From contig JAPMXV010000073.1 in the NCBI GenBank assembly GCA_026936335.1, forward strand, positions 124,001-188,000: a stretch of DNA of 64,000 nucleotides. Reading direction: 5' to 3'. Under the pieces are notes generated by a model. That model searched no databases. It worked only from the letters and a program-made list of their open reading frames with translations, and was not told the origin of the DNA. The position numbers were made by a program, and so were the translations under genes. Position 1 is the stretch's first letter. Every line of letters starts with the position of its first letter. The stretch is from Mantamonas sphyraenae STR306. Lineage: Eukaryota; Protista; CRuMs. Positions 5,940 through 59,920 of the stretch are shown here, one piece after another.

Positions 5940-7352
5940 ATGCAACGCACAGGTGGGGCAGGGTTTGGCAAGAAGAGTTCATCTGAGGCCGGGAACGCAG
6001 GGCGGGGTGGCTTTGGTCGCAACCCTTCCTCTTCTTCCTCCTCTTCCTCCTCTTCCTCCTCCTCGGGTCGCCGTCCACGCAAACGGATGCCCCAAAGACA
6101 ACAAGAGCCGGCACTGAAAACTGCCGTGCGCAGGGGGAGCATGGACACAGTGCAGCAGCTTCTGGACAAGGGTGAACTGGAAGCAACCAGTGATGAAGAT
6201 GCATGTGACCTGTTCACCATCGCTGTGCTCCGGGGCCACGTGGCTGTCGCGGAACTGTTGATGTCGCACGGGGTCACTCTCCACGGCCGTGGCACCGAAC
6301 CGATGCGACTGTGGGACAACCTGGCCCCATCCGAGGAGAAGCAACAATTGGGGTTGCTTCTGGCGCGAGCAGGTGTGGATGTGCACGAGGTGAACCTTGG
6401 CAACGAGCCGCAGGGGGTGGCGATTGCCGCGACCGCAGTCGACGTGGCAAGGATGCCCATTTCATCGATCCCACTGGCCAGATCGGATCAGGGGGAATTG
6501 GATATGAGCCAGCTCAGTGCCAGCATGAAGAAGCGTCCATGGATGGTGGACCAGGTGTGGGCAAGGAACATCACCCTGCAACCAGGCGACCCCATGGAGG
6601 TGTTTGTGTCCCAGCTCCATTCACTGCACTTGCAAGGCAGCGTGTTGGATCGTGTGGCATGGGACCATCTCAAGAGTGGCCTTTTGCAGGCTCAGTGTCC
6701 TGTGCGTGTGCTGGGGTTGCCAAGCGACGGGGTTCCACATGATGTCATGTCTGTGCTGCGACAGTGCCTGACCGTGGGTCCATGGGCTCGTTTGGAGGTT
6801 CTCATGGTGGCGGGTATCCACGACACAGACTTGGATGAGTGCAACTGGCATGTGTGTGATGTCCAGGGGGTCGACAAGCAGAACGCGATCTTGACACGAA
6901 ACTGCGAGGCTGCAGGACGGCTGCGCGTTGCAGCCGAGCAATTGGATTTGGATCAGGTGCGTGAACTTGTGGCCATGGGCGTGGACATCAACACACGCGG
7001 GGGAAAGGTTGCCAGCAGGACGGTGCTGGAGATTGCGGCTGCCAAGGGGGGTGTCAAGGGTGGCGAATTGGTGCAGCTGGCACGCAAGCTGGGAGCACGA
7101 CGCACCTCTGCGGCGGTTCGAGAAGCCAAAAGACGAATCAATGACACGTGGACACAAAACACACATTGGCTGCGTGGATCACATGCATTGGATCAGACAC
7201 TGGAAACAGCGCTTGCCATCAACTTGGAGGAGCGAGAACGAATGTTTACAGCAGGAGGGATGCATGCGTATGAACCCACAGCTTTGTGGTGCACTGTCCC
7301 AGATGAGGTGATGGAGCGGGTGTTGGGATGGGTGGGATCTGCGTGGGATTGA
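5940..7352 (+). CDS. Ankyrin-like + degenerate LRR + ankyrin + conserved C-terminal tail; divergent relative of the 42-60 kb array
   Basis: Ankyrin-like IAVLRGHVAVAELLMSHGV and ELVAMGVDINTRG..RTVLEIAAAKG. C-terminus HWLRGSHALDQTLETALAINLEERERMFTAGGMHAYEPTALWCTVPDEVMERVLGWV aligns by eye with the array tail HWIGWSGVVDEGMEVALVMNGEEREVMFECGGMEGYEASCEWWTVPDEVMERVLGWM. Confidence 0.8.
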   Translation: MQRTGGAGFGKKSSSEAGNAGRGGFGRNPSSSSSSSSSSSSSGRRPRKRMPQRQQEPALKTAVRRGSMDTVQQLLDKGELEATSDEDACDLFTIAVLRGHVAVAELLMSHGVTLHGRGTEPMRLWDNLAPSEEKQQLGLLLARAGVDVHEVNLGNEPQGVAIAATAVDVARMPISSIPLARSDQGELDMSQLSASMKKRPWMVDQVWARNITLQPGDPMEVFVSQLHSLHLQGSVLDRVAWDHLKSGLLQAQCPVRVLGLPSDGVPHDVMSVLRQCLTVGPWARLEVLMVAGIHDTDLDECNWHVCDVQGVDKQNAILTRNCEAAGRLRVAAEQLDLDQVRELVAMGVDINTRGGKVASRTVLEIAAAKGGVKGGELVQLARKLGARRTSAAVREAKRRINDTWTQNTHWLRGSHALDQTLETALAINLEERERMFTAGGMHAYEPTALWCTVPDEVMERVLGWVGSAWD

Positions 7353-7530
7353 CGCAATCCGCCCCCCCCGTGCACAAGCACTGGTGAGCTTGGCACATTG
7401 ACACTGCCATTGGGGGCATCGGGTGCCCCCATGTGGGACGGGAGGAGGGGTAGGAGATGGAATTTGGCACACATGCAGACGGCAAGGAGGGATTTGCGTC
7501 CATCGTTGTCCCGCGTTCTCGACACTTGAA

Positions 7531-7646
7531 TGGAATCCAAGAAAGCAGAGTTCCCACCCCGCAATCACACACACACACACACACACACACTCTCTCTCTC
7601 TCTCACAAACATTGATTCAGTGACGAGGGTGGTGACGGTGCGTTGG
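7531..7646. repeat. Direct repeat, right copy
   Basis: Near-identical to 5831-5926; the microsatellite differs ((CA)n(CT)n). Lies just upstream of the CDP-alcohol transferase start. Confidence 0.9.
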
Positions 7647-7701
7647 TTGATCCAACCCGGTTCCCCCTTGAAGTGCCCCCCCCCCCCGTTCCCGAACAAG
7701 G

Positions 7702-8945: not shown

Positions 8946-9857
8946 ATGTCAACGAGCACGGTGGAGGCCATCGCACAGGAGTTGGAGGAACAATCCGAGT
9001 TGGAATTGTTTGCATTTGGGGAGTGCTTTGTGTATGCGGCCAAAGCCACGGGCACATCGATGGCACAGCGGGCACAGGATTGGGGCCTGAAGGACCCGCT
9101 TGCGGTGTGTTCCATCAAGGTGGTCAGCAAGGGCAGCGTCGGGTACATTCGACTGTACGACCTGGACACGGAGGAACTGTTTGCACAGGCGGTGATGGAT
9201 GGCCTGAGCAGTGAGTGTTTGGAACGGACGGCGGACAGCAGCCGGTACTTTGTGTGCCAGGTGCGAAGTGACGACGGCAAGAAAGCCTTTCTGGGCTTCG
9301 GGTTCAGGGACAGGGACAGTAGCGACGCCTTTCTCACCTCCATGGACTTTCATGATCGACATATTAACCTGGAGCGCAGGCGCAAGGAGGAGGCGGACGA
9401 GGACAAGGCGCTGGAGGCCCAGGAAGCGAAAGAGGAAGGGAATGAGCAGCAGCAGCAGCAGGAGAAGGAAGGCAGGAAGCCACGCAAGAAAAAGCACGAT
9501 TTCTCACTCGGGGCTGGGACAATCACCCTGTCTGTGGCAGGGAACAAGGGTCATGAGCCAAAGAAGAGTCCAAGGGGTGGGAAGAGTGGTGGTGGTGGTG
9601 GTGGACTGGGCCTTGCGCCTCCGCCGGAAGAAGGCAGCCCGTTGCACACACGCAAGCATGTCAAGACGACACAAGAGACAAGTGAGACACAGGGGAAGGA
9701 GACAGGGGCACAGGAGGAGGAGAGGGGACAGAGTAGCAGCACGGGCCAGCAGAAGGCAGGGAAGAAGGAGGAAGAGGGGGAGGTGGAGTGGGGGGAATTC
9801 GCAGAGGGGACCAGTGTCGATGTGGAAGAGGGTGATGATGAATGGGCGGCTTTTTGA
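8946..9857 (+). CDS. NECAP: Adaptin ear-binding coat-associated protein (NECAP/PHear domain), intact copy
   Basis: ECFVY, RAQDW, EELFAQ, ERTADSSRYFV, GKKAFLGFGFRDR, DFSL..GTITL, LAPPP and the C-terminal acidic WxxF motif (DDEWAAF). Confidence 0.9.
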   Translation: MSTSTVEAIAQELEEQSELELFAFGECFVYAAKATGTSMAQRAQDWGLKDPLAVCSIKVVSKGSVGYIRLYDLDTEELFAQAVMDGLSSECLERTADSSRYFVCQVRSDDGKKAFLGFGFRDRDSSDAFLTSMDFHDRHINLERRRKEEADEDKALEAQEAKEEGNEQQQQQEKEGRKPRKKKHDFSLGAGTITLSVAGNKGHEPKKSPRGGKSGGGGGGLGLAPPPEEGSPLHTRKHVKTTQETSETQGKETGAQEEERGQSSSTGQQKAGKKEEEGEVEWGEFAEGTSVDVEEGDDEWAAF

Positions 9858-10433
9858 TGCAGCCATCACACACGTGGGCATGGAGTCATCCGGAATGATT
9901 GATGGCCAAATACAGGGCAGGGCATGTGGTGCATCGACCAGTTGACAAGGATGATCCACAACGATGATTCTGCACAAACTGAATCTCATGAGAGGGAACG
10001 TGGGAACACACACAGGCACAGTCCATGGCAGGTCATTTGTGTGGCCAATTGGACATGGCACAGAGGATGGTGGGTGGGAAGGACGAAGTGGATGAATAGG
10101 GCAGTTGGGGATGGTGATGGGGGTTGATGAATGGCAGAGTTGGATGCGTGATTGAGTCACACATGAGCAGGGAACAACAATGGTTTTCCGTTGCGGATGA
10201 CCATGGATGAGGGAGTGCTGCGCATGGGTGACCACACTTTTCCTGTACAAGTAACGGTAGGTGGGAATGGCCATGGAGGGTTGGAAAGGGAGAGAGGGGT
10301 TGTGTGTGTGTGATTGTGTGTGTGTGTGCGTGTGGTGGGGGAAGGGTCTTTGGGTTTTGGGAGGAAACCCTCTCGCGTCACACCCAAGTCGTTGGCTGCT
10401 TGCTCACGAGGTGGGCGAACAGACACGAGTACG

Positions 10434-12921
10434 ATGAGTAGAGAACTGAGCCAACAGGAATGGAAAGAGTTGCTACAGGCCGGCGATGAGCAAGCGATCA
10501 GTCAAGCCTTGGCAGGCGCGGGCAAGGTGAGTGTTGTTGTGGAGCGCAGTGGACCACAAGTGATGTGGTCATGAATAGCAGTAGAATTGGACTAACAGCA
10601 CATTGCAGGTGCTAGACCTCATGGACAACCAGATTGGTGCCGAAGGGGCAGCTGCGTTGGGAACGGGACTGGCGCAGAACAGCACATTGCAGCAGCTGTA
10701 CCTCACTAGCAACCAGATTGGTGACGAAGGGGCATCAGCGTTGGGCACGGGACTGGCACAGAACAGCACATTGCAGTGGCTGTACCTCAGTGACAACCAG
10801 ATTGGTGCCGAGGGGGCAGCAGCGTTGGGTACGTTACTGGCACAGAACAGCACATTGCAGTGGCTGGACCTCAGAAGCAACCAGATTGGTGCCGAAGGGG
10901 CAGCAGCGTTGGGTACGTTACTGGCACAGAACAGCACATTGCAGTGGCTGGACCTCAGAAGCAACCAGATTGGTGCCGAAGGGGCAGCAGCGTTGGGTAC
11001 GTTACTGGCACAGAACTGCACATTGCAGCAGCTGGTCCTCAGTAGCAACAAGATTGGTGACGAAGGGGCAGCAGCGTTGGGCACGGGACTGGCACAGAAC
11101 AGCACATTGCAGTGGCTGGACCTCAGAAGCAACCAGATTGGTGCCGAAGGGGCAGCAGCGTTGGGTACGTTACTGGCACAGAACTGCACATTGCAGCAGC
11201 TGGTCCTCAGTAGCAACAAGATTGGTGACGAAGGGGCAGCAGCGTTGGGCACGGGACTGGCACAGAACAGCACATTGCAGCAGCTGTACCTCAGTAGCAA
11301 CCAGATTGGTGCCGAAGGGGCAGCTGCGTTGGGCATGGGACTGGCACAGAACAGCAGCTGCTGGTGTCTCTCTGGTGTTGACCATCCTGATCTGCAGGCC
11401 AAGATCGAACAAAACAAAGCACAGGCTGAGTCCTTCCTGTCCACTGCCCGTGACGGCGACACAAATACCATGGCGAAGTTGCTGGCATGGGGAGTGCCTG
11501 TGAACACTTGGGCGGACCGGAAGAACACTGCCCTTGGCATTGCTGTAGAGAAGGGTGACATCGACCTGTGCGCATGGCTGCTTGAGCGTGGTGCAAATCC
11601 CTACCTTCGACCTGATGACTCCAAACCCAACGCCCTTGATCTCGCCCATCGCAAGGGAAACACTGCCATCATTGATCTACTGGTGTCGCAGATGAGCTTG
11701 TCACACCCGCCTAGATCGCCTTCGCCACCGGTGATTGACGTTGAGTCGCATCTGGAGATTGCATGGTCAGACTTGCGACAGGGCGAGCTGATAGGAGAGG
11801 GTGGGTTTGCGTTTGTGTACAAAGGAATGCTGCGTGGAAGCACACCGGTGGCAATCAAGATGATGAAGGTGCAGGTGATGGATGAGGCACACACAGCCGC
11901 ATTCCACCACGAGGTGTCGGCGATGAAGCATCTGCGGCATCGCAATGTGTTGATGCTGCATGGGGTGTGCATGGAACAGCAGCAGGTGTGCATGGTGACG
12001 GAACTGTGTGAAATGGGGTCGCTGAACGCGCTGTTGCACGCCGAGGTGCGAGAGGAGCCACTGTCTGAGGCGATGAAGCTGCAGATTGCACTGGATGTGG
12101 CACAGGGGATGGCGTACCTGCATGGGTACCATCAGCCGATCATGCATCGGGATCTGAAACCGGAGAATGTGCTGCTGGATGAGCGGGGCGTGGCGAAAGT
12201 GAGCGACTTTGGCCTGAGCAGGAGCAAGGAGCACACAAAGACAAAGACCAAGGCAGGAGTGGGCACATGGCAGTACAGCGCACCCGAGGTGCTGTTTCAG
12301 GACGACAGTGGTGGTGGAGGCAACCAAGGCAAGAAGAAGAAGAAGAAGAAGAAGCGTGGACTCAAGAATGATTCGTCATCGTCATCGTCGTCGTCATTGG
12401 AGTCGACATCATCGGGATCAGGGCCCTCGCATGGGTCACGGGGCAGTGAAGACGCGGGGGCACAGGCGTCGATTGACGAAAAGGTGGATGTGTACTCATT
12501 TGCGATGCTGTTGTGGGAGCTGGTGCATGAAGAGCGTCCATACGAGTACGAGGAAACGTACAGCCTGGAGAACCACGTGGTGGAGTGGGTCAAAGACAGG
12601 GACGTGCGAGAGGAAATCGACGAGGATGTTTGTCCGTCGTGGGCGGCGGCGCTGATCCAGCGGTGTTGGCAGACTGACCCTGCGGGACGACCGACGTTTG
12701 AGGAGATTGTGGAGGAGCTGAGGAAGGCAAAGGTGGAGGAGAAAGGGCAAGGGGGTGGAGAACGTGTGCACAGTGAGCTGGTGGAGCTGGTGCACGGGAT
12801 TCATGCATTGCTGGTGGCGCAGGGAAAGGATGGGATGCTGCTGCAGGTGTCACTGGACGAGTTTCGACAGGAGTTTCGTCATTCGCAGGGCGAGGTGGAG
12901 GATGAGGAGGATGGTGTGTGA
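10434..12921 (+). CDS. LRR(9)-ankyrin-TKL-type protein kinase, copy 1 (exons 10434-10526, 10609-12921)
   Basis: 31-codon first exon, gtgagt donor, ACTAAC...ttgcag acceptor. 9 x 28-aa RI-like LRRs, ankyrin (NTALGIAVEKGDIDLCAWLLERGANP), kinase motifs GEGGFAFV, VAIK, HRDLKPEN, DFG, GTWQYSAPE, DVYSFA. Confidence 0.9.
10603..11358 (+). repeat. 9 x 84-bp coding LRR tandem repeat
   Basis: Unit ttgcagNNgctgNNcctcNNNNNNaaccagattggtgmcgaaggggcagcwgcgttgggcacgggactggcacagaacagcaca; 756 bp = 9 x 84. Confidence 0.95.
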
Positions 12922-13552
12922 CAAGACAAAGGAGATGGGCATGGTGGATGACCCAGGGCTGTGTGGCAAGGAATGGATTGTCAACGCCAGTCCGTGTTTC
13001 TCAGATACGCAAGCGCCTCCTGAATGACCATGCACAGAGGCCACAAGAGACAACAACGCACCACTGAACAGCAAATGGAATGCGTGCATGGCCATGCAAG
13101 CTTGTTGGCCGATGATCATCACCACGATCAAGTCTTCCAAGTCGGCGTTGTGTGTGTGATCCTACAATATACATTCTGCTTCGTTGCTGTCGCTGCTATG
13201 ATTCTGCCATGTGCGCCTGATGCAACAATGCCCACACTCCGGCAATTCGGCACCATGGAAGCTACTCCGAGACATTGCTGTCGAGCTTTGCGGCCAGCAT
13301 GGTCTCAAACTCGTCAGCCACGACCCCATTGAAGGATGATGTCCATGCCTTTTCAGGGTTCTTGTATGTGGTGGGTCGTTCTGGAGTGAGGTGGAAGGCG
13401 GGGACGCGGGGCAGGGTGGTGATGAAGGTGTGTCAGGGGTTTGGGTGCTGTGAGAGGACACCAGGGGATCACCAAGGGGGGAACACATGTCCTATCGATC
13501 TCATGTATGCGTGTGCATGGTATGATGCACTGTGCATCACAGTGCAATTTTC

Positions 13553-14299
13553 ATGGACGTGTGTGTGGGCAGCGTCAGCTACATTCGACTGTACGACCTG
13601 GACACGGAGGAACTGTTTGCACAGGCGGTGATGGATGGCCTGAGCAGTGAGTGTTTGGAACGGACGGCGGACAGCAGCCGGTACTTTGTGTGCCAGGTGC
13701 GAAGTGACGACGGCAAGAAAGCCTTTCTGGGCTTCGGGTTCAGGGACAGGGACAGTAGCGACGCCTTTCTCACCTCCATGGACTTTCATGATCGACATAT
13801 TAACCTGGAGCGCAGGCGCAAGGAGGAGGCGGACGAGGACAAGGCGCTGGAGGCCCAGGAAGCGAAAGAGGAAGGGAATGAGCAGCAGCAGCAGCAGCAG
13901 CAGCAGGAAGGCAGGAAGCCACGCAAGAAAAAGCACGATTTCTCACTCGGGGCTGGGACAATCACCCTGTCTGTGGCAGGGAACAAGGGTCATGAGCCAA
14001 AGAAGAGTCCAAGGGGTGGGAAGAGTGGTGGTGGTGGTGGTGGAGGACTGGGCCTTGCGCCTCCGCCGGAAGAAGGCAGCCCGTTGCACACACGCAAGCA
14101 GGTCAAGACGACACAAGAGACAAGTGAGACACAGGGGAAGGAGACAGGGGCACAGGAGGAGGAGAGGGGACAGAGTAGCAGCACGGGCCAGCAGAAGGCA
14201 GGGAAGAAGGAGGAAGAGGAGGAGGTGGAGTGGGGGGAATTCGCAGAGGGGACCAGTGTCGATGTGGAAGAGGGTGATGATGAATGGGCGGCTTTTTGA
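13553..14299 (+). pseudogene. 5'-truncated NECAP duplicate (open frame retained; junction supplies an ATG at 13553)
   Basis: Near-identical to NECAP from GSV(G/S)YIRL onward; lacks roughly the first 60 codons. Confidence 0.8.
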
Positions 14300-14905
14300 T
14301 GCAGCCATCACACACGTGGGCATGGAGTCATCCATCATGTAATGATTGGTGGTCAAATACAGGCTGTGGTGCATCGACCAGTTGACAAGGATGATCCACA
14401 ACGATGATTCTGCACAAACTGAATCTCATCAGAGGGAACGTGGGAACACACACAGGCACAGTCCATGGCAGGTCATTTGTGTGGCCACTTGGACATGGCA
14501 CAGAGGATGGTGGGTGGGAAGGTAGAAGTGGATGAATGTAGGGCTGTTGGGGATGGTGATGGGGGTTGATGAATGACAGAGTTGGATGCGTGATTGAGTC
14601 ACACATGAGCAGGGAACAACAATGGTTTTCCGTTGCGGATGACCATGGATGAGGGAGTGCTGCGCATGGGTGACCACACTTTTCCTTCACAAGCAACGGT
14701 GGGTTGGAATGGCCATGGAGGGTTGGAAAGGGAGAGAGGGGTTGTATGTGTGTGTATGTGTGTGTGTGATTGTGTGTGTGTGATTGTGTGTGTGTGTGTG
14801 CGTGTGGTGGGGGAAGGGTCTTTGGGTTTTGGGAGGAAAACCCTCTCGCACAGCTCCGAGTCTTTGGCTGCTTGCTCACGCGGTGGGCGCACAGACACGG
14901 TTGCG

Positions 14906-17159
14906 ATGAGTAGAGCACTGAGCAAACAGGAATGGAAAGGGTTGCTACAGGCCGGCGATGAGCAAGCGATCAGTCAAGCCTTGGCAGGCGCGGGCACGGT
15001 GAGTGTTGTTGTGGAGCGCAGAACTCGTTGCCACTTGGACCACAAGTGATGAGGTCATGTCATGAATAGCAGTGGAATTGGAAACTAACAGCACGTTGCA
15101 GAAGCTGTACCTCATGAACAACCAGATTGGTGACGAAGGGGCAGCTGCGTTGTGCACGGGACTGGCACAGAACAGCACATTGCAGCTGCTGTACCTCATG
15201 AACAACCAGATTGGTGCCGAAGGGGCAGCTGCGTTGGGCACGGGACTGGCACAGAACAGCACATCGCAGCTGCTGTACCTCATGAACAACCAGATTGGGG
15301 ATGAAGGGGCAGCTGCGTTGGGCACGGGACTGGCACAGAACAGCACATTGCAGCAGCTGGACCTCGAAAACAACCAGATTGGTGACGAAGGCGCAGCTGC
15401 GTTGGGCACGGGACTGGCACAGAACAGCACATTGCAGCAACTGGACCTCAGTCGCAACCAGATTGGTGACGAAGGGGCAGCAGCGTTGGGCACGGGACTG
15501 GCACAGAACAGCGCATTGCAGAAGCTGGAGCTCAATGGCAATCAGATCGGCGCCGAAGGGGCAGCTGCGTTGGGCACGGGACTGGCACAGAACAGCAGCT
15601 GCTGGTGTCTCTCTGGTGTTGACCATCCTGATCTGCAGGCCAAGATCGAACAAAACAAAGCACAGGCTGAGTCCTTCTTGTCCGCTGCCCGTGACGGCGA
15701 CACAGAAACCATGGCCGAGTTGCTGGCATGGGGAGTGCCTGTGAACACTTGGGCGGACCGGAAGAACACTGCCCTTGGCATTGCTGTCGAGAAGGGTGAC
15801 ATCGACCTGTGCGCATGGCTGCTTGAGCGTGGGGCAAATCCCTACCTTCGAACTAATGGCTCCAAACCCAACGCCCTTGATATCGCCCATCGCAAGGGGA
15901 ACACTGCCATCATTGATCTACTGATGACGCAGATGTTGTCACACCCGCCTAGATCGCCATCACCACCGGTGATTGACGTGGAGTCGCATCTGGAGATTGC
16001 ATGGTCAGACTTGCGACAGGGCGAGCTGATAGGAGAGGGTGGGTTTGCGTTTGTGTACAAAGGAATGCTGCGTGGAAGCACACCGGTGGCAATCAAGATG
16101 ATGAAGGTGCAGGTGATGGATGAGGCACACACAGCCGCATTCCACCACGAGGTGTCGGCGATGAAGCATCTGCGGCATCGCAATGTGTTGATGCTGCATG
16201 GGGTGTGCATGGAACAGCAGCAGGTGTGCATGGTGACGGAACTGTGTGAAATGGGGTCGCTGAACGCGCTGTTGCACGCCGAGGTGCGAGAGGAGCCACT
16301 GTCTGAGGCGATGAAGCTGCAGATTGCACTGGATGTGGCACAGGGGATGGCGTACCTGCATGGGTACCATCAGCCGATCATGCATCGGGATCTGAAACCG
16401 GAGAATGTGCTGCTGGATGAGCGGGGCGTGGCGAAAGTGAGCGACTTTGGCCTGAGCAGGAGCAAGGAGCACACAAAGACAAAGACCAAGGCAGGAGTGG
16501 GCACATGGCAGTACAGCGCACCCGAGGTGCTGTTTCAGGACGACAGTGGTGGTGGAGGCAACCAAGGCAAGAAGAAGAAGAAGAAGAAGAAGCGTGGACT
16601 CAATGATTCGTCATCGTCGTCATCGTCGTCGTCATTGGAGTCGACATCATCGGGATCAGGGCCCTCGCATGGGTCACGGGGCAGTGAAGACGCGGGGGCA
16701 CAGGCGTCGATTGACGAAAAGGTGGATGTGTACTCATTTGCGATGCTGTTGTGGGAGCTGGTGCATGAAGAGCGACCATACGAGTACGAGGAAACGTACA
16801 GCCTGGAGAACCACGTGGTGGAGTGGGTCAAAGACAGGGACGTGCGAGAGGAAATCGACGAGGATGTTTGTCCGTCGTGGGCGGCGGCGCTGATCCAGCG
16901 GTGTTGGCAGACTGACCCTGCGGGACGACCGACGTTTGAGGAGATTGTGGAGGAGCTGAGGAAGGCAAAGGTGGAGGAGAAAGGGCAAGGGGGTGGAGAA
17001 CGTGTGCACAATGAGCTGGTGGAGCTTGTGCACGGGATGCATGCATTGCTGGTGGCGCAGGGAAAGGATGGGATGCTGCTGCAGGTGTCACTGGACGAGT
17101 TTCGACAGGAGTTTCGTCATTCGCAGGGCGAGGTGGAGGATGAGGAGGATGGTGTGTGA
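14906..17159 (+). CDS. LRR(6)-ankyrin-TKL kinase, copy 2 (exons 14906-14998, 15102-17159)
   Basis: Same architecture as copy 1; 6 LRRs at 15096-15599; kinase nearly identical. Confidence 0.9.
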
Positions 17160-17861
17160 CAAGACAATGCAGAATGCGTTGCAATTCTGCCGCAGTGGTA
17201 TAAAATGAGCCAGGAGTTAACAGTCTATTTCACCATGACATAGGAGATGGGCATGGTGGATGACCCTGGACCGTGTGGCAAGGAATGGATTGTCAACGCC
17301 AGTCCATGTTTCTCAGATACGCAAGCGCCTCCTGAATGACCATGCACAGAGGCCACAAGAGACAACAACGCACCACTGAACAGCAAATAGAGTTCGTGCA
17401 TGGCCATGCGTGCTTGTTGGCGGACGATCACCACGATCAAGTCTTCCAAGTCGACTTTGTGTGTGTGATCCTTCAATGTACATTCTGCTTCGTTGCTGTC
17501 GCTGCTATGATTCTGCCATGTGCGCCTGATGCAACAATGCCCACACTCCGGCATTCGGCGTCATGAAAGCTACTCCGAGACATTGCTGTCGAGCTTTGCG
17601 GCCAGCATGGTCTCAAACTCGTCAGCCACGACCCCATTGAAGGATGATGTCCATGCCTTTTCAGGGTTCTTGTATGTGGTGGGTCGTTCTGGAGTGAGGT
17701 GGAAGGCGGGGACGCGGGGCGGGGTGGTGATGAAGGTGTGTCAGGGGTTTGGGTGCTGTGAGAGGACACCAGGGGATCACCAAGGGGGAATACACATGTC
17801 CTATCGATCTCATGTATGCGTGTGCATGGTATGATGCACTGTGCATCACAGTGCAATTTTC

Positions 17862-30540: not shown

Positions 30541-30572
<32 letters not shown>

Positions 30573-30623
30573 TTTGTGCTGCCTGTGCTTCCACGTGCAC
30601 CTGCCTGCATGCCATTGCCCCCA

Positions 30624-30656
<33 letters not shown>

Positions 30657-47428: not shown

Positions 47429-49116
47429 ATGAGCGCACAGATCAGGAGTGTGTGGAGGGCTCTGTTGTGGTATGGTGACGAGGAGCGCATTGAAGCGGCC
47501 TTGGCAGATGCGGGGGAGGTGAGTTTGCGATTAGAGGGAAATGAAGTCGGTTGGCCGTGGTGGGGAGTGAGGGAGGAGAGTTGCGTGAAATGTGGGACCA
47601 CTGGGTTCGCAAGTGACAGCTGACACGAATGATGCAGGACTTGAGTCTGCAAATGCTGGATATTGGTTCCGCCGAAGCAAAGTCACTGGCAAGGGCACTC
47701 GCTGCGAACAGCAGCTTACAGACGTTATCCCTCAGAATGAACGACATTGGGGATGAAGGTGCATCGGCGCTGGCCAAGGCTTTGGCAGCTAACCGCACGT
47801 TGCTGTCCCTGGCCTTGACCAACAATGCAATCGGCGTCGACGGAGCAACAGCACTGGCACAGGCACTGAATGAGAACAACAGCTTGCAGAGGCTGTACCT
47901 CGGCGGTAACAACATCGGATCAGAGGGAGCAGCATCACTCGCCAAGGCAATGGATATGAAGAGCAGCTTGCAGATGTTGGAACTCAGTGACAACAATGTC
48001 GAGTCAGAAGGGGCAGCAGCACTGGGTCAGGCGCTGAGAGAGAACAGCAGCCTAAAGGCACTGGACCTCAGAAGCAACAGCATTGGGGCAGAAGGGGCAG
48101 CAGCGTTGGCACATGCGCTTTCTGAGAACCGCAGCTTGCTGAGACTGGACGTCAGCAACAACAGCATCGAGGCAGAAGGAGCAGTATTACTGGCACAGGC
48201 ACTAGTTGAGAACCGCAGCTTGCTGAGACTGGACCTTGGGGCCAATGGCATCGGGGATGTGGGAGCAGAAGCAATGGCCCAGTCAATGTGCGAGAACAGT
48301 AGCTTGCAGACACTGCATCTCAGCAAGAACAACATCGGAGCAGAAGGGGCGGAAGCACTGGCGCAGGCGCTGAATGGGAACAGCACCTTGCAATCAGTTA
48401 CCCTTGATGGGAACAATATCGGGGCAGAAGGAGCAGCTGCACTGGCACAGGCACTCTGTGTGAACAGCAGCTTGCAATTCCTGGACCTTCGCATGAACAG
48501 GATCGGGATACCAGGGGCGGTGGCACTGACCCAGGCACTGGATGTGAACAGAAGGTTGCAGAGACTTGTCCTGGGCTCGAACGGCTTCTTGAAAGACGGG
48601 ACGGGAGCAATGGCCAAGGCGATGGAAAACAATCGATCGTGCTGGGCGATCCACTTCGGATTCGGTGTCGATGAAGCGCTGCAATCGCTGTTGAAGAGGA
48701 ACAAGGATCGGCATGTGGAGTTTGTGGAGTGTGGAGATGTGGAGAGGATGGCTGCGCTGAGGGAGTGGGGTGTGCCTGTAGACACGCTTGCTGCACGTGA
48801 GGAGACTGCGTTGGAGAGAGCGGTGAAGCAAGGGAATGATGAGGTGGTGGAGGCATTGCGGGGCTGGGGTGCTACAGTGAGGGAAGAGACGGTGAAGTTG
48901 GTGAGGGAGGAAGGATGGAGGAAGGAGTGGCATTGGATTGGGTGGAGTGGGGTGGTGGATGAGGGGATGGAAGTGGCGTTGGTGATGAATGGGGAGGAGA
49001 GGGAAGTGATGTTTGAGTGTGGAGGGATGGAAGGGTATGAGGCGAGTTGTGATTGGTGGACGGTGCCGGATGAGGTGATGGACAGGGTGTTGGGGTGGAT
49101 GGGGAAGGGAGAGTGA
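47429..49116 (+). CDS. LRR(~12)-ankyrin-tail protein, copy C (exons 47429-47518, 47638-49116)
   Basis: Same architecture; gtgagt donor. Confidence 0.88.
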
Positions 49117-49445: not shown

Positions 49446-49473
49446 ACACAAGGGGATCCAGGTCGATTTGATC

Positions 49474-51424
49474 ATGAGCACAACACATGAGGTGGACTGG
49501 GAGACACTGCTGCAGATCGGTGATCAGGAACGCATTGGGGAGGCATTGGAAGAAGCGGGGGAGGTAAGTTTGTAGTTTTGCAGGTTGGCTTCTGGGAAAG
49601 GCGGGTCTATGGCTGACACAGATGCTGTAGACCTTGGAACTACACGGCATGGAGACCAAAGGTGCGTCCGTGGTTCGCGCACTGATGGCAATGAGCCATT
49701 TGCGAGCACAGGCGTCTCTGAAGAACGGCAACGGCGAGATGGAAGCATCAGCGGGGGGGTCACAAGCACAGGGACAGAGACGGAACGTGATTAGGAACAA
49801 AATCAGCGACAGAGGTGCAGCCGTGCTGGCCGTGGCGTTGAGTGAGAACAGCAGGTTGACGACGCTGAACCTCGAGAGCAACAGCATCGGGCCAGAAGGG
49901 GCAGCAGCGCTTGCAACGGCAGTACGAAAGAACAGGAGCTTGCTGACGCTGATCCTTGCAAGGAACGAAATCGGGGCAGGAGGGGCGGAAGCACTGGCGG
50001 GGGCACTGGGGGAGAACGGAACCTTGCGCACACTGAACGTCGTTGCCAACAGGATCAACGACGAAGGGGCGGCAGCACTGGCACGTGCACTCAATGGGAA
50101 CAGCTCCTTGAGAAGGTTGGATCTCGACAGCAACTGCATCGGGGCAGAAGGGGCAACAGCACTGGCGGAGGCACTAAGAGAGAATAGCAGCTTGAAGAGA
50201 TTGGATCTGGACAGCAACCACATCGGGGCAATTGGGGCAGTCGCCTTGGCAAAGGCACTGGCAGAGAATAGCAGCTTGCAGACACTGTCACTTCACATGA
50301 TCAACATTGGGGGAGAAGGAGTCGAAGCAATTTTCAAGGCACTGCAAAGGAACAACTGCTTGCAGACACTGGACCTCGCCAGCACCTGGATCCAAGGGGA
50401 AGGGGCAGCAGCACTGGCAGAGGCACTGAGTGGGAACAGCAGCTTGAAGACGCTGAAACTCAGTAGCAACAGGTTTGGAGACGAAGGGGCAGCATCACTG
50501 GCGCAAGGACTGGCTGAGAACAGCAGCTTGCAGACACTGGACCTCCGCCAAACCCGCATTGGGCCAGAAGGAGCCGCTGCACTGGCACAGGTGCTGAGTG
50601 AGAACGACAGTTTGCAAACAGTCAACCTTGACCTCAACAACATCGGAGCAGAAGGGGCGGAAGCACTGGCGCAGGCCCTGAATGTGAACAGCACCTTGCA
50701 ATCAGTTACCCTTGATGGGAACAACATCGGGGCAGAAGGAGCAGCTGCACTGGCACAGGCACTCTGTGTGAACAGCACCTTGCAATTCCTGGACCTTCGC
50801 ATGAACAGGATCGGGACACAAGGGGCGATGGCACTGGTCCAGGCACTGGATGTGAACAGAAGCTTGCAGAGACTTGTCCTGGGCTCGAACGGCTTCTTGA
50901 AAGACGGGACGGGAGCAATGGCCAAGGCGATGGAAAACAATCGATCGTGCTGGGCGATCCACGTCGGATTCGGTGTCGATGAAGCGTTGCAATCTCTGTT
51001 GAAGAGGAACAAGGAGCGGCATGTGGAGTTTGTGAAATGTGGGGATGTACAGAGGATGGCTGCGCTGAGGGAGTGGGGTGTGCCTGTGGACACGCTTGCT
51101 GCACGTGAGGAGACTGCGTTGGAGAGAGCGGTGAAGCAAGGGAATGATGAGGTGGTGGAGGCATTGCGGGGCTGGGGTGCTACAGTGAGGGAAGAGACGG
51201 TGAAGTTGGTGAGGGAGGCAGGATGGAGGAGGGAGTGGCATTGGATTGGGTGGAGTGGGGTGGTGGATGAGGGGATGGAAGTGGCGTTGGTGATGAATGG
51301 GGAGGAGAGGGAAGTGATGTTTGAGTGTGGGGGGATGGAAGGGTATGAGGCGAGTTGTGCGTGGTGGACGGTGCCAGATGAGGTGATGGAGAGGGTGTTG
51401 GGGTGGATGGGCAAGGGAGGGTGA
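49474..51424 (+). CDS. LRR(~13 regular + degenerate N-terminal)-ankyrin-tail protein, copy D (exons 49474-49563, 49631-51424)
   Basis: gtaagt donor, ctgtag acceptor; first two repeats irregular; last LRRs match copy C. Confidence 0.86.
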
Positions 51425-51723: not shown

Positions 51724-53236
51724 ATGGACACAGAGCCATCACTGTATTGGAAGGAATTGCTGCAGAGCGGTGATGAGGAGCGCATTGGAGTGGCATTGGC
51801 AGAGGCCGGGGAGGTGAGTTTGCGAGAAGAGGGCAACGAAGTCGGTTGGCCGTGGTGGGGAGTGAGGAAGGAGAGGCGTGTGAATGTGGGACCGCTGGGT
51901 GCGCATGTGACAGCTGACACGGATTGTGTAGGAGATGTGGCTGCAAATGATGGATTTTGGTCCCGCCGAAGTGAAATCCCTGGCAAAGGCACTGGCTGGG
52001 AACAGCAACTTGCAGAGGTTGAACCTCGGTATCAATGACATAGGGGACGAAGGTGCCTCGGAACTGGCCAAGGCTTTGGCAGCGAACAGCAGCTTGTTGT
52101 CCCTGGCCTTGAGCAGCAATGCAATCGGCGTCGACGGAGCAACAGCACTGGCACAGGCGCTGAATGAGAACAACAGCCTGCTGAGGCTGTACCTCACAAG
52201 AAACAGCATCAAGGCACAAGGGGCAGCAGCTTTGGCACAGGCACTGGGTAAGAACAGCAGGTTGCAGGTGTTGGAACTCCACAGCAACAGCATCGGGGAT
52301 GAGGGAGCAGCAGCACTGGGGCAGGCACTGAGTGAGACCAGATGGTTGCATACACTGGACCTCAGAAACAATAGCATCGGGGCAGCAGGAGCAGCAGCTT
52401 TGGCACAAGGACTGGGTGAGAACAGAAGTCTCCGGCAACTGAATCTTGGCAACAACAACTTCGGGGACGAAGGGGCAGCAGCAATTGGACAGGCACTGAG
52501 GGAGAACAGTAGCTTGCAGACACTGAATCTCGACGACAACAACGTCGGAGCAGAAGGGGCAACAGCACTTGGGCAGGCACTGAGTCAGAACAGCACCTTG
52601 CAGACAATGTTCCTCAACACCAACAGCCTCGGAGAAGAAGGCGCATCCGCTCTGGCTGAGGGACTGAGTGAGAACAGCACCTTGCAGAGACTGTACCTTG
52701 ACCAGAACAAGATCGGAGAAGAAGGAGTGTCGGCTCTGGCCAAGGCGATGGACAGCAATCGATCGTGCTGGCAGATGGAGGTCGGAGCCGTTGTCGATGA
52801 GGCATTGCAGGCACTGTTGAAGGGGAACAAGGAACGGCATGTGGAGTTTGTGCAGTGTGGGGATGTGGAGAGGATGGCTGCGCTGAGGGTGTGGGGTGTG
52901 CCTGTAGACACGGCACGTTGGGAGACGGCATTGGAACGAGCGGTGAAGCAAGGGAATGATGAGGTGGTGGAGGCATTGCGGGACTGGGGTGCTACAGTGA
53001 GTGAAGAGACCGTGAAGTTGGTGAGGGAGGGAGGATGGAGGAAGGAGTGGCATTGGATAGGGTGGAGTGGGGTGGTGGATGAGGGGATGGAGGTGGCGTT
53101 GGTGATGAATGGGGAGGAGAGGGAAGTGATGTTTGAGTGTGGAGGGATGGATGGGTATGAGGCGAGTTGTAAGTGGTGGACGGTGCCAGATGAGGTGATG
53201 GAGAGGGTGTTGGGGTGGATGGGCAAGGGAGGGTGA
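51724..53236 (+). CDS. LRR(~10)-ankyrin-tail protein, copy E (exons 51724-51813, 51932-53236)
   Basis: Same architecture; 5' end resembles copy C. Confidence 0.88.
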
Positions 53237-53504: not shown

Positions 53505-55393
53505 ATGGGCACACAGAAGAAAGTGAACTGGAAGGAACTGCTGCAGAGCGGTGATGAAGAGCGCATTGTTGTGGCGTTGGAAGAGGCGGGCGAGGTATGT
53601 TTGTGCGAGGCAACGTCTCCCGTGCGTGGGTATGGGCGGTGGTGACTGACACACCTGTGAAGACATTGAAACTGAGTTGGCTGGGCATTACGGCAGAGGA
53701 GGCAGTTGCACTGGCCACAGCACTGGCTGAGAACAGCAGTGTGCGCACGCTGAACCTCAACGTCAACAATACCTTCGGAGCAGAGGGGGCAGCAGCACTG
53801 GCACAGGCATTGTGTGTGAACAACAGCTTGCAGACAGTGAATCTCATCGGAAGTAGCATCGGGGACGAAGGAGCAGCGGCACTGGCACACGCACTGGGCG
53901 AGAACAGCAGCTTGCTCGCGCTGTGGCTTCAGGAGAACCACATCGCGTACGAAGGAGCTGCAGCGTTGGCCGAGGGATTGAGTGCCAACTGCAGCCTGCA
54001 GACACTAAGCTTTTCCGACAACACAGTTGGGGCAGAAGGAGCAGCTCTTCTGGCACAGGCGTTGTGTGTGAACGGCACCTTGCGGACGCTTGACTTGCAC
54101 GGCAACAGAATCGGTGACAAGGGAGCAGCAGCACTCGCAAAGTCACTGTGTGGTAACCAAAGCTTGCAGCAGCTGATTGTGAACAACAATGGCATCGGTG
54201 CAGAAGCAGCAGCAGAACTGGCCGCGGCACTTCGATGGAACAGCACTTTGCAGACACTGGGCCTTCAAAACAACAGAATCGGTGATGAAGGAACAGCAGC
54301 ACTGGCACAAACACTGGGTAGGAACAATGGCTTGCAGACACTGGAGCTCGACAAGAACAGAATTGGATCAGAAGGAGCAGCAGCACTGGGGCAGGCACTG
54401 AGTGAGAACAGCAGCTTGCTGGCACTGAGTGTAACCGACAACAACATCGGGGCAAAAGGGTCAGCAGCACTGGCACACGGTCTTGCTGTGAACAGTCGCT
54501 TGCAGGCACTGTTTCTCAGCAAGAACGGCATCGGAGACGAAGGTGCAGCAGCGCTTGTGCAGGCACTGAGTTCGAACAGTAGCTTGCAGACACTGCTTCT
54601 GAGCTTGAACAGCATCGGGGACACAGGGACAGCAGCGCTGGCACAGGCACTGGGTAGGAACAGTGGCTTGCAGCAAGTGAATCTCAACAACAACAACATT
54701 GGCGTACATGGGGCAACAGCACTAGCACAGGCACTGAGTGAGAACAGCACCTTGCAGACATTGCTCCTCAACAGCAACAGCATCGGGGAAGAAGGTTCTT
54801 CCGCTCTGGCTGAGGGATTGAGTGAGAACAGCAGCTTGCAAAGACTGTTCCTCAACCAAAACAAGATCGGGGAAGAAGGTGCATCCGCTCTGGCCAGGGC
54901 GATGGAAGACAATCGATCGTGCTGGGAGATTGAGTTTCGAATCGTCGACTCCAATCTGAAAGCACTGTTGAAGAGGAACAAGGATCGGCATGTGGAGTTT
55001 GTGGAGTGTGGTGATGTGGAGAGGATGGCTGCGCTGAGGGAGTGGGGTGTGCCCGTGGACACGCTTGCTACGTGGGCAGACACGGCATTGGAACGAGCGG
55101 TGAAGGGAGGAAATGATGAGGTGGTGGAGGCATTGCGGGGCTGGGGTGCTCAAGTGAGGGAAAAGACGGTGGAGTTGGTGAGGGAGGCAGGATGGAGGAG
55201 GAAGTGGCATTGGATTGGGTGGAGTGGGGTGGTGGATGAGGGGATGGAAGTGGCGTTGGTGATGAACGGGGAGGAGAGGGAAGTGATGTTTGAGTGTGGG
55301 GGGATGGAAGGGTATGAGGCGAGTTGTGAGTGGTGGACGGTGCCGGATGAGGTGATGGAGAGGGTGTTGGGGTGGATGGCCAAGGGAGGGTGA
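53505..55393 (+). CDS. LRR(~15)-ankyrin-tail protein, copy F (exons 53505-53594, 53663-55393)
   Basis: Same architecture; 68-nt intron. Confidence 0.88.
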
Positions 55394-55678: not shown

Positions 55679-57479
55679 ATGAGCACACAGATGGATGTAG
55701 ATTGGAAAGAGTTGCTGCAGAGCGGTGATGAGGAGCGCATTGCAGTGGCATTGGCAGAGGCGGGGGAGGCAAGTTTGCGCTGCGCGAAGGGAGGGGGAAT
55801 TCGTGGACGTGTCACAGACGAGGAGGGTTGAGAGGGGAGACACGAACGCATGGAGAGAGTAGATTATGGTCGATGGTTGCGTGAGATACGGGATGTGATC
55901 GCTGACACGAGTGGTGCAGCATTTGAGCCTGGGGAACAAGATCGTTGACAAACTGATGGTGACACTGGCCAAGGCACTGGCAAAGAACAGCAGTTTGAAG
56001 TCACTGAACCTTCGCAGCAACGTTATCGGGGACGAGGAAGCAGCAGAGCTGGCGCAGGCGCTGAGGGAGAACAGAAGTTTGGACCGCCTGGAACTCTACA
56101 AGAACAGCCTTGGCTACAGAGGGGTAGCAGCATTGGCAGACGCACTGTGTGTGAACAACACGCTGCGGAGCTTGAGCATCGGGAACGACAACATCGGAGA
56201 CGAAGTGGCAGCAGCACTGGCCAAGGTTCTTGTTGGGAACAGCTGCCTGCAGGAGCTGAGCCTTTGCTTCAACAACATCGGAGCCGAAGGGGCAGCAGCA
56301 CTGGCCGGGGCACTCTGTGTCAACAGTAGCTTGCAAATATTGCTTCTCAGCATGAACGGCATCGGAGACGAAGGTGCAGCAGCACTAGGGCAAGCACTGA
56401 GTAAGAACAGCAGCCTGAACACAATGTTGCTCATCAAGAACGGAATCGGGGACGAAGGGGCATCAGAACTGGCACAGGGACTGCGCGAGAACAGCAGCTT
56501 GTTGAGGCTTTTGCTCCAGGAAAATCGGATCGGAGACGAAGGTGCAGCAGCGTTGGCCAAGGCATTGCGTGCCAACAGCAGCGTGCAGACACTGAACTTG
56601 ACCGACAACAATGTTGGGGCAGAAGGAGCCTCAGCTCTGGCTAGGGGACTGTGTGAGAACAGCACTTTGCGGACACTGGACCTCAACAGGAACAGAATTG
56701 GATCAGAAGGAGCAGCGGCACTGGGGCATGCACTAAGAAAGAACAGCAGCTTGCGTGCACTGGGTCTCAGCGACAACAACATCGGGGCAGCAGCTGCAGC
56801 AGCAATGACCGGGGCTCTCTGTGTGAACAGTGGCTTGCAGACACTGTTCCTATCCATGAACAGCCTCGGGGACGAAGGTGCAGCAGCTCTGGCTGAAGGA
56901 CTATCTCAGAACAGCACCTTGCAGAGACTCTACCTCGCCAGCAACAGCATCGAGGTGGAAGGTGCATCCGCTTTGGCCAAGGCGATGGAAGACAACCGGT
57001 CGTGCTGGAAGATTCAGATCAGAGTCGACGACGCTGTAGCGCTGCAATCGCTGTTGGAGAGGAACAAGGAGCGGCATGTGGAGTTTGTGGAATGTGGAGA
57101 TGTACAGAGGATGGCTGCGCTGAGGGAGTGGGGGGTGCCTGTAGACACGCTTGCTGCACGTGAGGGGACGGCGTTGCAACGAGCGGTGAAGCAAGGGAAT
57201 GATGAGGTGGTGGAGGCATTGCAAGGCTGGGGTGCTACAGTGAGGGAAGAGACGGTGAAGTTGGTGAGGGAGGTAGGATGGAGGAGGGAGTGGCATTGGA
57301 TTGGGTGGAGTGGGGTGGTGGATGAGGGGATGGAAGTGGCGCTGGTGATGAATGGGGAGGAGAGGGAAGTGATGTTTGAGTGTGGTGGGATGGATGGGTA
57401 TGAGGCGAGTTGTGAGTGGTGGACGGTGCCGGATGAGGTGATGGAGAGGGTGTTGGGGTGGATGGCCAAGGGAGGGTGA
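55679..57479 (+). CDS. LRR(~13)-ankyrin-tail protein, copy G (exons 55679-55768, 55920-57479; GC-AG intron)
   Basis: Donor is GAG|gcaagt at the position where the other copies have GT. Confidence 0.82.
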
Positions 57480-57776
57480 GGAGGGAATGAATGGTGGCAT
57501 TGGGTTGGGTGGGGTTTGGCATTGGAGGGGATGTGGGTGGGAGGGGGAGAAAGGAGAGCAGTGTTGGGTGTCTGCTGCTCGGATGCGAAGGGTGGACCAC
57601 TGGAACTTGGATAGAGACAAGGTTGGTGTGCAAGGAGGGAAGAGTGTGCAGAGGGAGGGATGCGACTGTGGATGGGCCTGGGTCATGGGAGGGGTGTTGT
57701 GGAAGGCAAAAAGTGGATGCGGAATTCAGTGTGACATTCTGAAGCTCACATGGGACGCAGGACCAGTTGGATGACC

Positions 57777-59920
57777 ATGGGCACACAGACGAAAGTGAAC
57801 TGGAAGGAACTGCTGCAGAGCGGTGATGAGGAGCGCATTGGGGTGGCGTTGGAAGAGGCGGGGGAGGTATGTTTCGGGGCGGCAGGTTTCCCGTGCGTGG
57901 GCATGGGTGGTGGTGACTGACACCCGTGTTGCAGACATTGCAACTGAGTTGGCTGGGCATCAGAGCAGAGGAGGTAGTTGCACTGGCCACAGCACTGGCG
58001 GTGAACAGCAGTGTGCGCACGCTGAACCTCGACTTCAACAAATCCTTCGGAGCCGAGGGGGCAGCAGCACTGGCACAGGCATTGTGTGTGAGCAACAGCT
58101 TGCAGACAGTGAATCTCTACGGGAACCGCATTGGGGACGAAGGAGCAGCGGCACTGGCACTGGCACTGGGTGAGAACAGCAGCTTGCTGGCGATTTGGCT
58201 CCAGAACAACCGCATCGGATACGAAGGAGCAGCAGCGTTGGCCAAGGGATTGAGTGCCAGCTGCAGCTTGCAGACACTGAGCTTATCCGACAACACACTT
58301 GGAGCAGAAGGAGCAGCAGCACTGGCACAGGCGTTGTGTGTGAACAGCACCTTGCGAATGCTTGACGTGCACGACAACAGAATCGGTGACAAGGGAGCAG
58401 CAGCACTCGCAAAGTCACTGTGTGGCAACCAAAGCTTGCAGCAGCTGATTGTGAACAACAATGGCATCGGTGCAGAAGCAGCAGCAGAACTGGCCGGAGC
58501 ACTCAGTTTGAACAGCACTTTGCAGACACTGGGCCTTCAAAGCAACAGAATCGGTGACACAGGAACAGCAGCACTGGCACAGGCACTATGTGGCAACTGC
58601 AACTTGATGGAACTGCGTCTCAGCGCCAACCAGATTGGTGACACAGGAGGAGCAGCACTGGGGCAGGCACTGAGTGAGAACAGCAGCTTGCTGGCACTGA
58701 GCCTCAGCGACAACAACATCGGGGCAGAAGGGTCAGCAGAACTGGCACACGGTCTTGCTGTGAACAGTCGCTTGCAGACACTGTTTCTCAGCAAGAACGG
58801 CATCGGCGACGAAGGGGCAACAGCACTTGGGCAGGCACTGAGTTCGAACAGTTGCTTGCAGACACTGCTTCTGAGCATGAACAGCATCGGGGACACAGGG
58901 GCAGCAGCGCTTGGGCAGACACTGACTGAGAACAGCAGCTTGAAGACCATCTACCTCGACAGAAACAGCATTGGGGCAGAAGGAGCCTCAGGTCTGGCTA
59001 GGGGACTGTGTGAGAACAGAAGCTTGCGGAGACTTTACCTCAATCAGAACAGCATCGGTGCAGAAGGAGAATCAGCTCTGGCTAGGGGACTGAGTCAGAA
59101 CAGCAGCTTGCAAAGACTAGGCCTCAGTATGAACAACCTCGGGGCGGAAGGGACAGCGGCAATGGCACAGGCGTTGAGTGAGAACAACAGCTTGCAGCAT
59201 CTGAATCTCAACGACAACAACATCGGGGAAAAGGGGGCAACAGCGTTGGCTCAGGCGCTGAGTGTGAACAGCGCCTTGCACACAATGCTCCTCGACAACA
59301 ACAGCGTCGGGGAAGAAGGTGCATCAGCTCTGGCTGAGGGACTGAGTAAGAACAGCACCTTGCAGAGACTGTACCTCGGCAGAAACAGCATCGAGGAGGC
59401 AGGTGCATCCGCTCTGGCAAAGGCGATGGAAGACAATCGATCGTGCTGGCAGATTCAGATCGGAGCCGTTGTCGATGAGACATTGCAGGCACGGTTGAAG
59501 AGGAACAAGGATCGGCATGTGGAGTTTGTGCAGTGTGGGGATGTGAAGAGGATGGCTGCGCTGAGGGAGTGGGGTGTGCCTGTGGACACACTTGCTGCAC
59601 GTGAGGTGACGGCGTTGCAACGAGCGGTGAAGGAAGGGAATGATGAGGTGGTTGAGGCATTGCGGGACTGGGGTGCGAATGTGAGGGAAGAGACGGTGGA
59701 GTTGGTGAGGGAGGCAGGATGGAGGAAGGAGTGGCATTGGATTGGGTGGAGTGGGGTGGTGGATGAGGGGATGGAAGTGGCGTTGGTGATGAACGGGGAG
59801 GAGAGGGAAGTGATGTTTGAGTGTGGAGGGATGGATGGGTATGAGGCGAGTTGTGCGTGGTGGACGGTGCCAGATGAGGTGATGGAGAGGGTGTTGGGGT
59901 GGATGGCCAAGGGAGGGTGA
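57777..59920 (+). CDS. LRR(~18)-ankyrin-tail protein, copy H (exons 57777-57866, 57935-59920)
   Basis: Same architecture; closest to copy F. Confidence 0.88.

Follow-up and report, generated by a model that had tools for sequence, protein, structure and literature searches.

Tandem LRR-ankyrin genes with diversifying repeat faces and two alternative C-terminal modules in a Mantamonas genome

A 64,000-nucleotide stretch of the Mantamonas sphyraenae STR306 genome (contig JAPMXV010000073.1, forward-strand positions 124,001 to 188,000; hereafter the window) carries two tandem clusters of genes in which a variable array of leucine-rich repeats (LRRs) and an ankyrin module precede either a protein kinase or a short tail. 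An earlier note on this DNA had proposed an undescribed intracellular non-self recognition repertoire. The arrays are a real, undescribed gene family; their design, a variable-LRR sensor, already has precedents. Excess non-synonymous change on the LRR face was found together with repeat shuffling, the signature of an arms-race recognition repertoire, and we consider it very probable that the arrays serve diversifying recognition. Our preferred reading, held with modest confidence, is a lineage-specific family of cytosolic recognition proteins with positive selection on the binding face, a kinase or Skp1-docking output, and foreign ligands.

Spliced gene models were analyzed and searched exon by exon. 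Genes A-C form cluster 1 and genes D-K cluster 2; gene 12 is a separate, divergent member. All 11 cluster genes have two exons with intact open frames. The first exon, described earlier as shared and about 30 codons long, was re-found in every one (30-31 codons) by hidden Markov model (HMM) search. It is least typical in F and G of cluster 2, and the degenerate “copy C” of the earlier note is probably F, the third copy of cluster 2, whose exon 1 is the most divergent. Exon 1 is followed by a phase-0 intron of 67-151 nt at the same point in 11/11 genes. Exon 2 then encodes 6-19 LRRs of the 28-amino-acid ribonuclease-inhibitor type, a cap and ankyrin repeats, with the cap and ankyrin motifs again present in all 11. 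Counting the first partial repeat, LRR numbers are 9, 6 and 19 in A-C and 18, 17, 12, 14, 10, 15, 13 and 18 in D-K. The C-terminal output is a TKL kinase in A-C and a 70-amino-acid tail in the eight genes D-K, and the tail also occurs in gene 12. Coordinates within the window are as follows.

Gene A, 10434..12921, plus strand: exon 1 10434-10526, exon 2 10609-12921; 9 LRRs, cap from 11350, ankyrins, TKL kinase from ~11776.
Gene B, 14906..17159, plus strand: exon 1 14906-14998, exon 2 15102-17159; 6 LRRs, cap from 15591, ankyrins, TKL kinase.
Gene C, 19204..22536, plus strand: exon 1 19204-19296, exon 2 19381-22536; 19 LRRs, cap from 20962, ankyrins, TKL kinase.
Cluster-1 tandem triplication, 9131..23274, plus strand: units starting at 9131, 13567 and 17876, ~91-95% identical, each with the 3′ part of a NECAP-like gene as a passenger.
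Gene D, 42542..44726, plus strand: exon 1 42542-42631, exon 2 42759-44726; 18 LRRs, cap from 44241, ankyrin, tail, one-helix F-box-like motif at 44670.
Gene E, 45008..47144, plus strand: exon 1 45008-45097, exon 2 45249-47144; 17 LRRs, cap from 46659, tail motif at 47088.
Gene F, 47429..49116, plus strand: exon 1 47429-47518, exon 2 47638-49116; 12 LRRs, cap from 48631, tail motif at 49060.
Gene G, 49474..51424, plus strand: exon 1 49474-49563, exon 2 49631-51424; ~14 LRRs, cap from 50939, tail motif at 51368.
Gene H, 51724..53236, plus strand: exon 1 51724-51813, exon 2 51932-53236; 10 LRRs, cap from 52757, tail motif at 53180.
Gene I, 53505..55393, plus strand: exon 1 53505-53594, exon 2 53663-55393; 15 LRRs, cap from 54911, tail motif at 55337.
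Gene J, 55679..57479, plus strand: exon 1 55679-55768 (GC donor), exon 2 55920-57479; 13 LRRs, cap from 56994, tail motif at 57423.
Gene K, 57777..59920, plus strand: exon 1 57777-57866, exon 2 57935-59920; 18 LRRs, cap from 59435, tail motif at 59864.
Gene 12, 5940..7352, plus strand: single 470-amino-acid open reading frame; N-terminal ankyrins, cap-like stretch from 6837, ankyrin, tail motif at 7293; no exon-1 motif.

Positions 6, 8, 10 and 11 of an LRR are exposed β-strand residues. Among the 31 LRR units of cluster 1, each of these positions carries 6-7 different residues, and adjacent positions are invariant. Pairwise comparison of face codons in this cluster gave a dN of 0.615 and a dS of 0.099. 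Synonymous change at face codons equaled that of the framework, so local hypermutation is not indicated. By a tree-free minimum count, 25.5 non-synonymous changes fell at the four face codons and 13.5 synonymous changes in all 28, which corresponds to a face ω (dN/dS) of ~3.7 (P=2.4e-5) and a framework value <1; face dN/dS in cluster 1 was ~3.7-6 overall. For cluster 2, 38 independent close pairs yielded a face ω of 1.45 (bootstrap 1.06-1.92, P=0.008) and a framework ω of 0.37. In codon runs with IQ-TREE, the tree of face codons was much longer. The ankyrin loops of cluster 1, delimited after inspecting the alignment, showed 12.5 non-synonymous and 0.5 synonymous changes (ω 3.8, P=7e-4), compared with an ω of 0.21 in the kinase. 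All of these values should be considered approximate; the direction is clear in both clusters, and both the variable LRR surface and the excess of non-synonymous LRR change for which the earlier note had suggested a per-domain check were found. Other parts are under purifying selection, with ω of 0.2-0.25 in the kinase and 0.18 in the tail linker, and gene 12 compared with K gave 0.34 at dS >1.

The arrays appear to evolve by tandem duplication and by unequal crossing-over, with the 84-bp LRR unit as the piece exchanged. Some units occur more than once, in identical form, within A and within C, the last repeats of G are shared with F, and J is a mosaic whose first repeats are D/E-like and later repeats I/K-like. 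In G, the first 72 amino acids of exon 2 (49631-49846) have lost the LRR pattern, with the frame still open. Cluster 1 arose by recent triplication, its introns being 98% identical and its kinase dS 0.04. Across cluster 2, DNA identity climbs from ~70% in the LRRs to 96% in the tail with a parallel drop in silent divergence, which points to conversion or crossing-over at the 3′ end. The effectors had been called nearly invariant; purifying selection does act on them, and their near-constancy partly reflects recent duplication or conversion. An assembly artefact was rejected, as copies differ by ~5-9% in cluster 1 and by far more in cluster 2, with all frames intact. At ~42225-42260, before gene D, lies a short copy of the last codons of the tail and the whole inter-gene spacer, either left over from a copy since lost or the microhomology from which the array started. 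The NECAP-like gene (8946-9857) has two 5′-truncated copies inside the cluster-1 triplication, at 13567-14299 and 17876-18608, with frames still open.

An HMM of cluster-2 exon 1 recovered exactly these 11 exons in a six-frame search, with cluster-1 copies at E 2e-8 to 4e-7 and the next match at E >4. Pairwise exon-1 scores between clusters were reached by 0/5000 shuffles. Cap and ankyrin are 40% identical between clusters (E 1e-13). When K and H were used as queries, the cluster-1 cap and ankyrin scored above all 150 best ankyrin proteins of a 1.84-billion library; when D was used, two library ankyrin proteins scored slightly above them. The between-cluster similarity of exon 1 and ankyrin, on which the earlier note had let its case depend, is therefore significant, and common ancestry of the exon 1-LRR-cap-ankyrin chassis is supported by these comparisons. 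Between clusters, synonymous sites are saturated (pS 0.81), no LRR unit exceeds 76% framework identity and none is shared. For these reasons kinase and tail are best read as the result of a single ancient replacement at the C-terminus; nothing suggests continuing exchange between the clusters, and the description of the effectors as “swappable” was not borne out.

In Pfam scans, A and C (the cluster-1 genes scanned) matched LRR_6, Ank and PK_Tyr_Ser-Thr, and D, G, H and K (the cluster-2 genes scanned) matched LRR_6, with Ank weak or absent; the cluster-2 ankyrin is backed by further homology and fold searches. LRR_6 scored above its Pfam threshold for the 28-amino-acid repeats, which places them in the ribonuclease-inhibitor-like class named earlier. 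Their best solved-structure matches included axonemal proteins, ribonuclease inhibitor, and NLRP and NOD-type structures. Exon 1 leads straight into the first LRR strand, as a cap would; it does not qualify as an LRR unit. Hydropathy scanning, the sole method used, gave maxima of 0.26 in exon 1 and 1.07 in the part after the LRRs and revealed no transmembrane-like stretch other than one borderline LRR window in J, and no signal peptide or hydrophobic leader was seen by it in the array proteins. The proteins thus look cytosolic, as the earlier note had them.

In the mechanism that we propose, exon 1 would cap the N-terminus of a ribonuclease-inhibitor-type LRR horseshoe, and the concave LRR sheet and ankyrin loops would bind fast-changing foreign cytosolic proteins (from viruses, endoparasites or ingested bacteria). 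In A-C, ligand binding might relieve autoinhibition of the TKL kinase or cluster it, giving a signal. The one-helix F-box-like motif at the C-terminus of D-K and gene 12 might dock on Skp1, whereupon the bound protein would be ubiquitinated and degraded. A single old exchange of C-terminal modules would account for both outputs. Our data support the recognition step; ligand identity and both outputs we infer. We lean slightly towards a foreign ligand, that is, a defence role.

The three kinases of A-C, recognized as such in the earlier note, have intact Gly loop, VAIK, HRDLK, DFG and APE motifs and start within ~30 amino acids of the ankyrin end. Their nearest solved relatives are CTR1, TNNI3K, Roco4 and MLK4, so the TKL assignment of the earlier note holds. 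After APE (~12300-12450 in A), these kinases contain a low-complexity insert of ~55 amino acids that includes eight consecutive lysines and might act in nuclear localisation or membrane binding.

Gene 12 does keep the ankyrin and tail ascribed to it, with 41% identity to the arrays over 135 amino acids (E 1e-24), and it has extra N-terminal ankyrins and lacks exon 1. About three β-α units in a low-confidence predicted structure of its middle part may be degenerate or decayed LRRs; LRRs were not significant there by HMM or profile test. The gene is flanked by ~100-bp direct repeats (5840-5939 and 7542-7659) that copy the region upstream of the next gene, a CDP-alcohol phosphatidyltransferase, which suggests insertion or duplication with a borrowed promoter. 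Its last 19 residues align with positions 3-21 of the 42 in F-box_5, the sole Pfam family matching the gene 12 end, at 12-13.5 bits (cut-off 25.5; E 0.05-0.16). Array proteins end ~18 amino acids past the start of the tail motif, with one terminal helix predicted at low confidence; the tail lacks the three helices of a cellular F-box and the two of a poxviral one. In cowpox CP77, a C-terminal F-box reduced to its first helix follows ankyrins and binds Skp1 (PMC4353913), and because of this precedent an adaptor role is plausible; we nevertheless regard Skp1 binding by the tail as tentative and somewhat doubtful. What stands of the “F-box-like tail” is the shared tail, the F-box itself being a single-helix motif with a sub-threshold match in gene 12 only. 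The proposed signalling arm has an intact TKL kinase, and the ubiquitin-ligase adaptor of the proposed destruction arm goes back to the F-box_5 match of gene 12.

Several points weigh against the preferred reading. The array genes contain no NTPase switch to explain activation, and LRRs of their type are frequent in proteins of flagella and the cytoskeleton. Selection was tested by counting methods, applied to recombining paralogues from one genome, and the ankyrin-loop boundaries were chosen with the alignment already in view. With Pfam, no F-box or PRANC match was obtained for the K tail or for exon 2 of D, G, H and K, and the gene 12 match lies below the gathering score. The tail structure prediction has low confidence and no F-box appeared among fold or PDB matches; fold searches with the tail and gene 12 predictions returned ankyrins or noise only.

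Specific relatives were absent from a length-limited search of cap, ankyrin and tail against 5.8 billion proteins and from a full-length query search with the tail region. In an exhaustive HMMER search of 1.84 billion representatives, the best 150 matched the ankyrin and none had an LRR unit or the tail, although weaker tail-only matches could rank lower. Viral, metagenome and prokaryotic contigs and plasmids yielded no relatives of exon 1, cap or tail, and prokaryotic matches were generic 28-amino-acid LRRs lacking all three. Note that these searches of large protein collections did not include the kinase, so other LRR-ankyrin-kinase proteins may exist. A narrow literature search found no description of the LRR-ankyrin-kinase/tail architecture. 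One low-coverage contig in a bacterial metagenome-assembled genome (L001, 29-925) encodes a 28-amino-acid LRR array that varies at the same face positions, without cap, ankyrin or tail; it is possibly a eukaryotic contaminant.

The closest design is that of the brown-algal LRR-ROCO candidate receptors (Ectocarpus, Saccharina), in which intracellular LRR arrays sit on a constant module, repeats are shuffled and four concave LRR sites are positively selected; the immune role is inferred in both cases (PMC11378527). Those genes differ in having a ROC-COR GTPase and one 72-bp exon per repeat (PMC11378527), whereas the array genes place 28-amino-acid ribonuclease-inhibitor-type repeats within one exon, followed by ankyrin and kinase or tail, with no Roc or COR match in the Pfam-scanned array genes. 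The recognition signature of the repertoire proposed in the earlier note stands, and variable-LRR candidate receptors had already been described in brown algae. Poxviral and bacterial ANK/F-box (PRANC) proteins, including CP77, share an ankyrin, a linker and a truncated F-box-like helix at the extreme C-terminus and are multicopy (PMC4353913); the array genes have only about two ankyrins, placed after a long variable LRR array, are intron-containing nuclear genes, lack a PRANC match and bind Skp1 only putatively. Chlamydial NEX1/PEX1 LRR-F-box/BTB families show tandem expansion, widely varying LRR number and a constant ubiquitin-adaptor module, but they are bacterial, their adaptor is N-terminal and Pfam-detectable, and purifying selection is reported for them (PMC4209131). 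With animal and plant NLRs, the arrays share a cytosolic location and a variable repeat sensor under diversifying selection with a constant output, the LRRs being ribonuclease-inhibitor-type as in NLRP and NOD-type structures. Unlike NLRs, they have no NACHT or NB-ARC and their output is C-terminal; Pfam scans of A, C, D, G, H, K and gene 12 gave no match to an NTPase family, and the 11 full translations leave no room for one. Ankyrin-TKL and LRR-TKL kinases (TNNI3K, Roco4/LRRK, CTR1-like and plant LRR receptor kinases) also fuse a TKL kinase to repeat domains; the arrays differ in their LRR-ANK-kinase order, their lack of ROC-COR or a transmembrane segment, and their diversifying repeats. By the defining features tested, the array genes are neither NLRs, ROCOs, receptor kinases nor VLRs.

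Recognition of intracellular invaders in single-celled eukaryotes is largely open, and this locus is a concrete, testable candidate: an orphan family with positively selected binding residues, in which one type of sensor is joined to either of two outputs. The variable-LRR receptor design would here have arisen independently once more, lacking the NTPase switch of NLRs and the GTPase switch of ROCOs. Should the tail bind Skp1, this would be a case of a host employing a layout of ankyrin and minimal C-terminal F-box mostly known from viruses and intracellular bacteria. The most far-reaching version, an independently evolved, NTPase-free intracellular immune repertoire of a deep-branching protist, with kinase alarm and direct Skp1-cullin-F-box (SCF) destruction of foreign proteins from one chassis, both arms under arms-race selection and possibly with cluster-2 modules joined by read-through splicing, we consider unlikely.

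Fungal incompatibility receptors recognize polymorphic self proteins after cell contact or fusion. Allorecognition, or kin or mating discrimination, in which the variable faces would bind such self proteins and trigger kinase signalling or degradation, would leave the same diversifying selection and repeat shuffling, and a cytosolic location would suit a post-fusion check; no linked polymorphic partner gene was seen in the window, however, and at least 11 simultaneous paralogues suit many ligands better than allelic matching, so we hold it improbable. It is rather improbable that the proteins are offensive effectors, delivered into a host or prey cell with exon 1 as a delivery header, the LRR-ankyrin part binding host targets and the tail hijacking host SCF. 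Poxviral ANK/F-box and chlamydial LRR/F-box families are thought to act in this way. Viruses and intracellular bacteria are the best-known sources of proteins in which a truncated C-terminal F-box follows ankyrins (PMC4353913), chlamydiae that infect amoebae have tandemly expanded LRR/F-box families (PMC4209131), and exon 1 is a separate, conserved N-terminal unit. Yet the hydropathy scan showed no leader that would deliver them, the cap-like run of exon 1 into the first LRR strand does not suit a header, and the chlamydial families showed no positive selection (PMC4209131). Finally, the genes might be ordinary LRR proteins of the flagellar or cytoskeletal type under neutral birth-and-death, with relaxed surfaces and effectors homogenised by conversion. 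This would fit the axonemal and ribonuclease-inhibitor matches, the 3′ ends, which are clearly homogenised by conversion or recent duplication, and the passenger NECAP fragments, by which duplication here can be blind. Relaxation yields a dN/dS of up to 1 and not of 3.7-6, however; the variable codons lie in alternation with invariant codons and could not be separated from them by conversion tracts; and 11/11 frames are intact. The face dN/dS results largely refute this neutral explanation, which is very improbable.

Introns of the array genes have a GT donor (GC in J), a YAG acceptor (AAG in I) and, 17-18 nt from the intron end, a CTRAC branch site, and comparable signals occur in the unrelated exportin-7 and sterol methyltransferase genes of the window. 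A branch-like CT[C/G]AC motif followed by CAG also precedes all 11 start codons, 30-35 nt upstream:

Cluster 1, plus strand: 10403, 14875, 19173.
Cluster 2, plus strand: 42510, 44976, 47397, 49443, 51693, 53473, 55648, 57745.

This is probably the 3′ end of an intron in the 5′ untranslated region, read-through splicing and trans-splicing being the other candidate readings; a conserved donor matching the upstream acceptor was not found in cluster 1. A similar branch-like motif and acceptor lie directly before the ASF1 start (25629). Cluster 2 might instead be partly one transcription unit, with a GTGAGG over each stop codon spliced to the acceptor of the next copy to give multi-module polyproteins or alternative modules served by one upstream exon. 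A donor-like GTGAGG does overlap the stop at 7/7 junctions and occurs before gene D as well, the branch and acceptor ahead of every start codon are conserved, and five of the seven junctions are in frame without a stop. Those five share one ancestor, however; the frame is lost at F-G and interrupted by a stop at H-I, the two clusters have different acceptor phases, and spacers of 268-357 nt are ample for a compact genome in which two neighbouring genes lie 48 nt apart. Partial read-through is distinctly improbable, and a single giant gene was rejected as a general model.

The “NLR-like protease” noted between the clusters is a multi-exon gene:

29840-33137, minus strand: CHAT, NACHT/NB-ARC NTPase, Cbl-type EF-hand and SH2.

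Its CHAT protease has a His motif near 32255 and a Cys motif near 31915, with a probable intron (32230-32044) in between. No sensor repeats (LRR, TPR or WD40) were detected in the domain scan, and nothing ties the gene to the LRR-ankyrin arrays, its surroundings being housekeeping genes. It is read as a STAND protease with SH2, a possible phosphotyrosine reader, instead of sensor repeats, which is unusual in itself.

The window is compact eukaryotic DNA of 55-60% GC with short introns. Housekeeping genes encode Avl9, an AMP-binding enzyme, a NECAP-like protein, ASF1, a ubiquitin-like protein, a GOST seven-transmembrane protein, exportin-7 and a sterol methyltransferase. Eight proteins of the window were looked up by exact sequence and none had an entry in the collections; ASF1 has ~46% identity to its best full-length database matches, and the source organism appears to be a divergent protist. 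The Avl9 stop is followed by the next same-strand start after only 48 nt (3410-3459), as in a very compact genome. The minus-strand gene at 117-770 has a C-terminus that we take to be MOB1-like and that might serve as a phylogenetic marker. GC skew is strongly positive at 40000-60000, reaching 0.65 per kb, with maxima in the G-rich tails and spacers of cluster 2.

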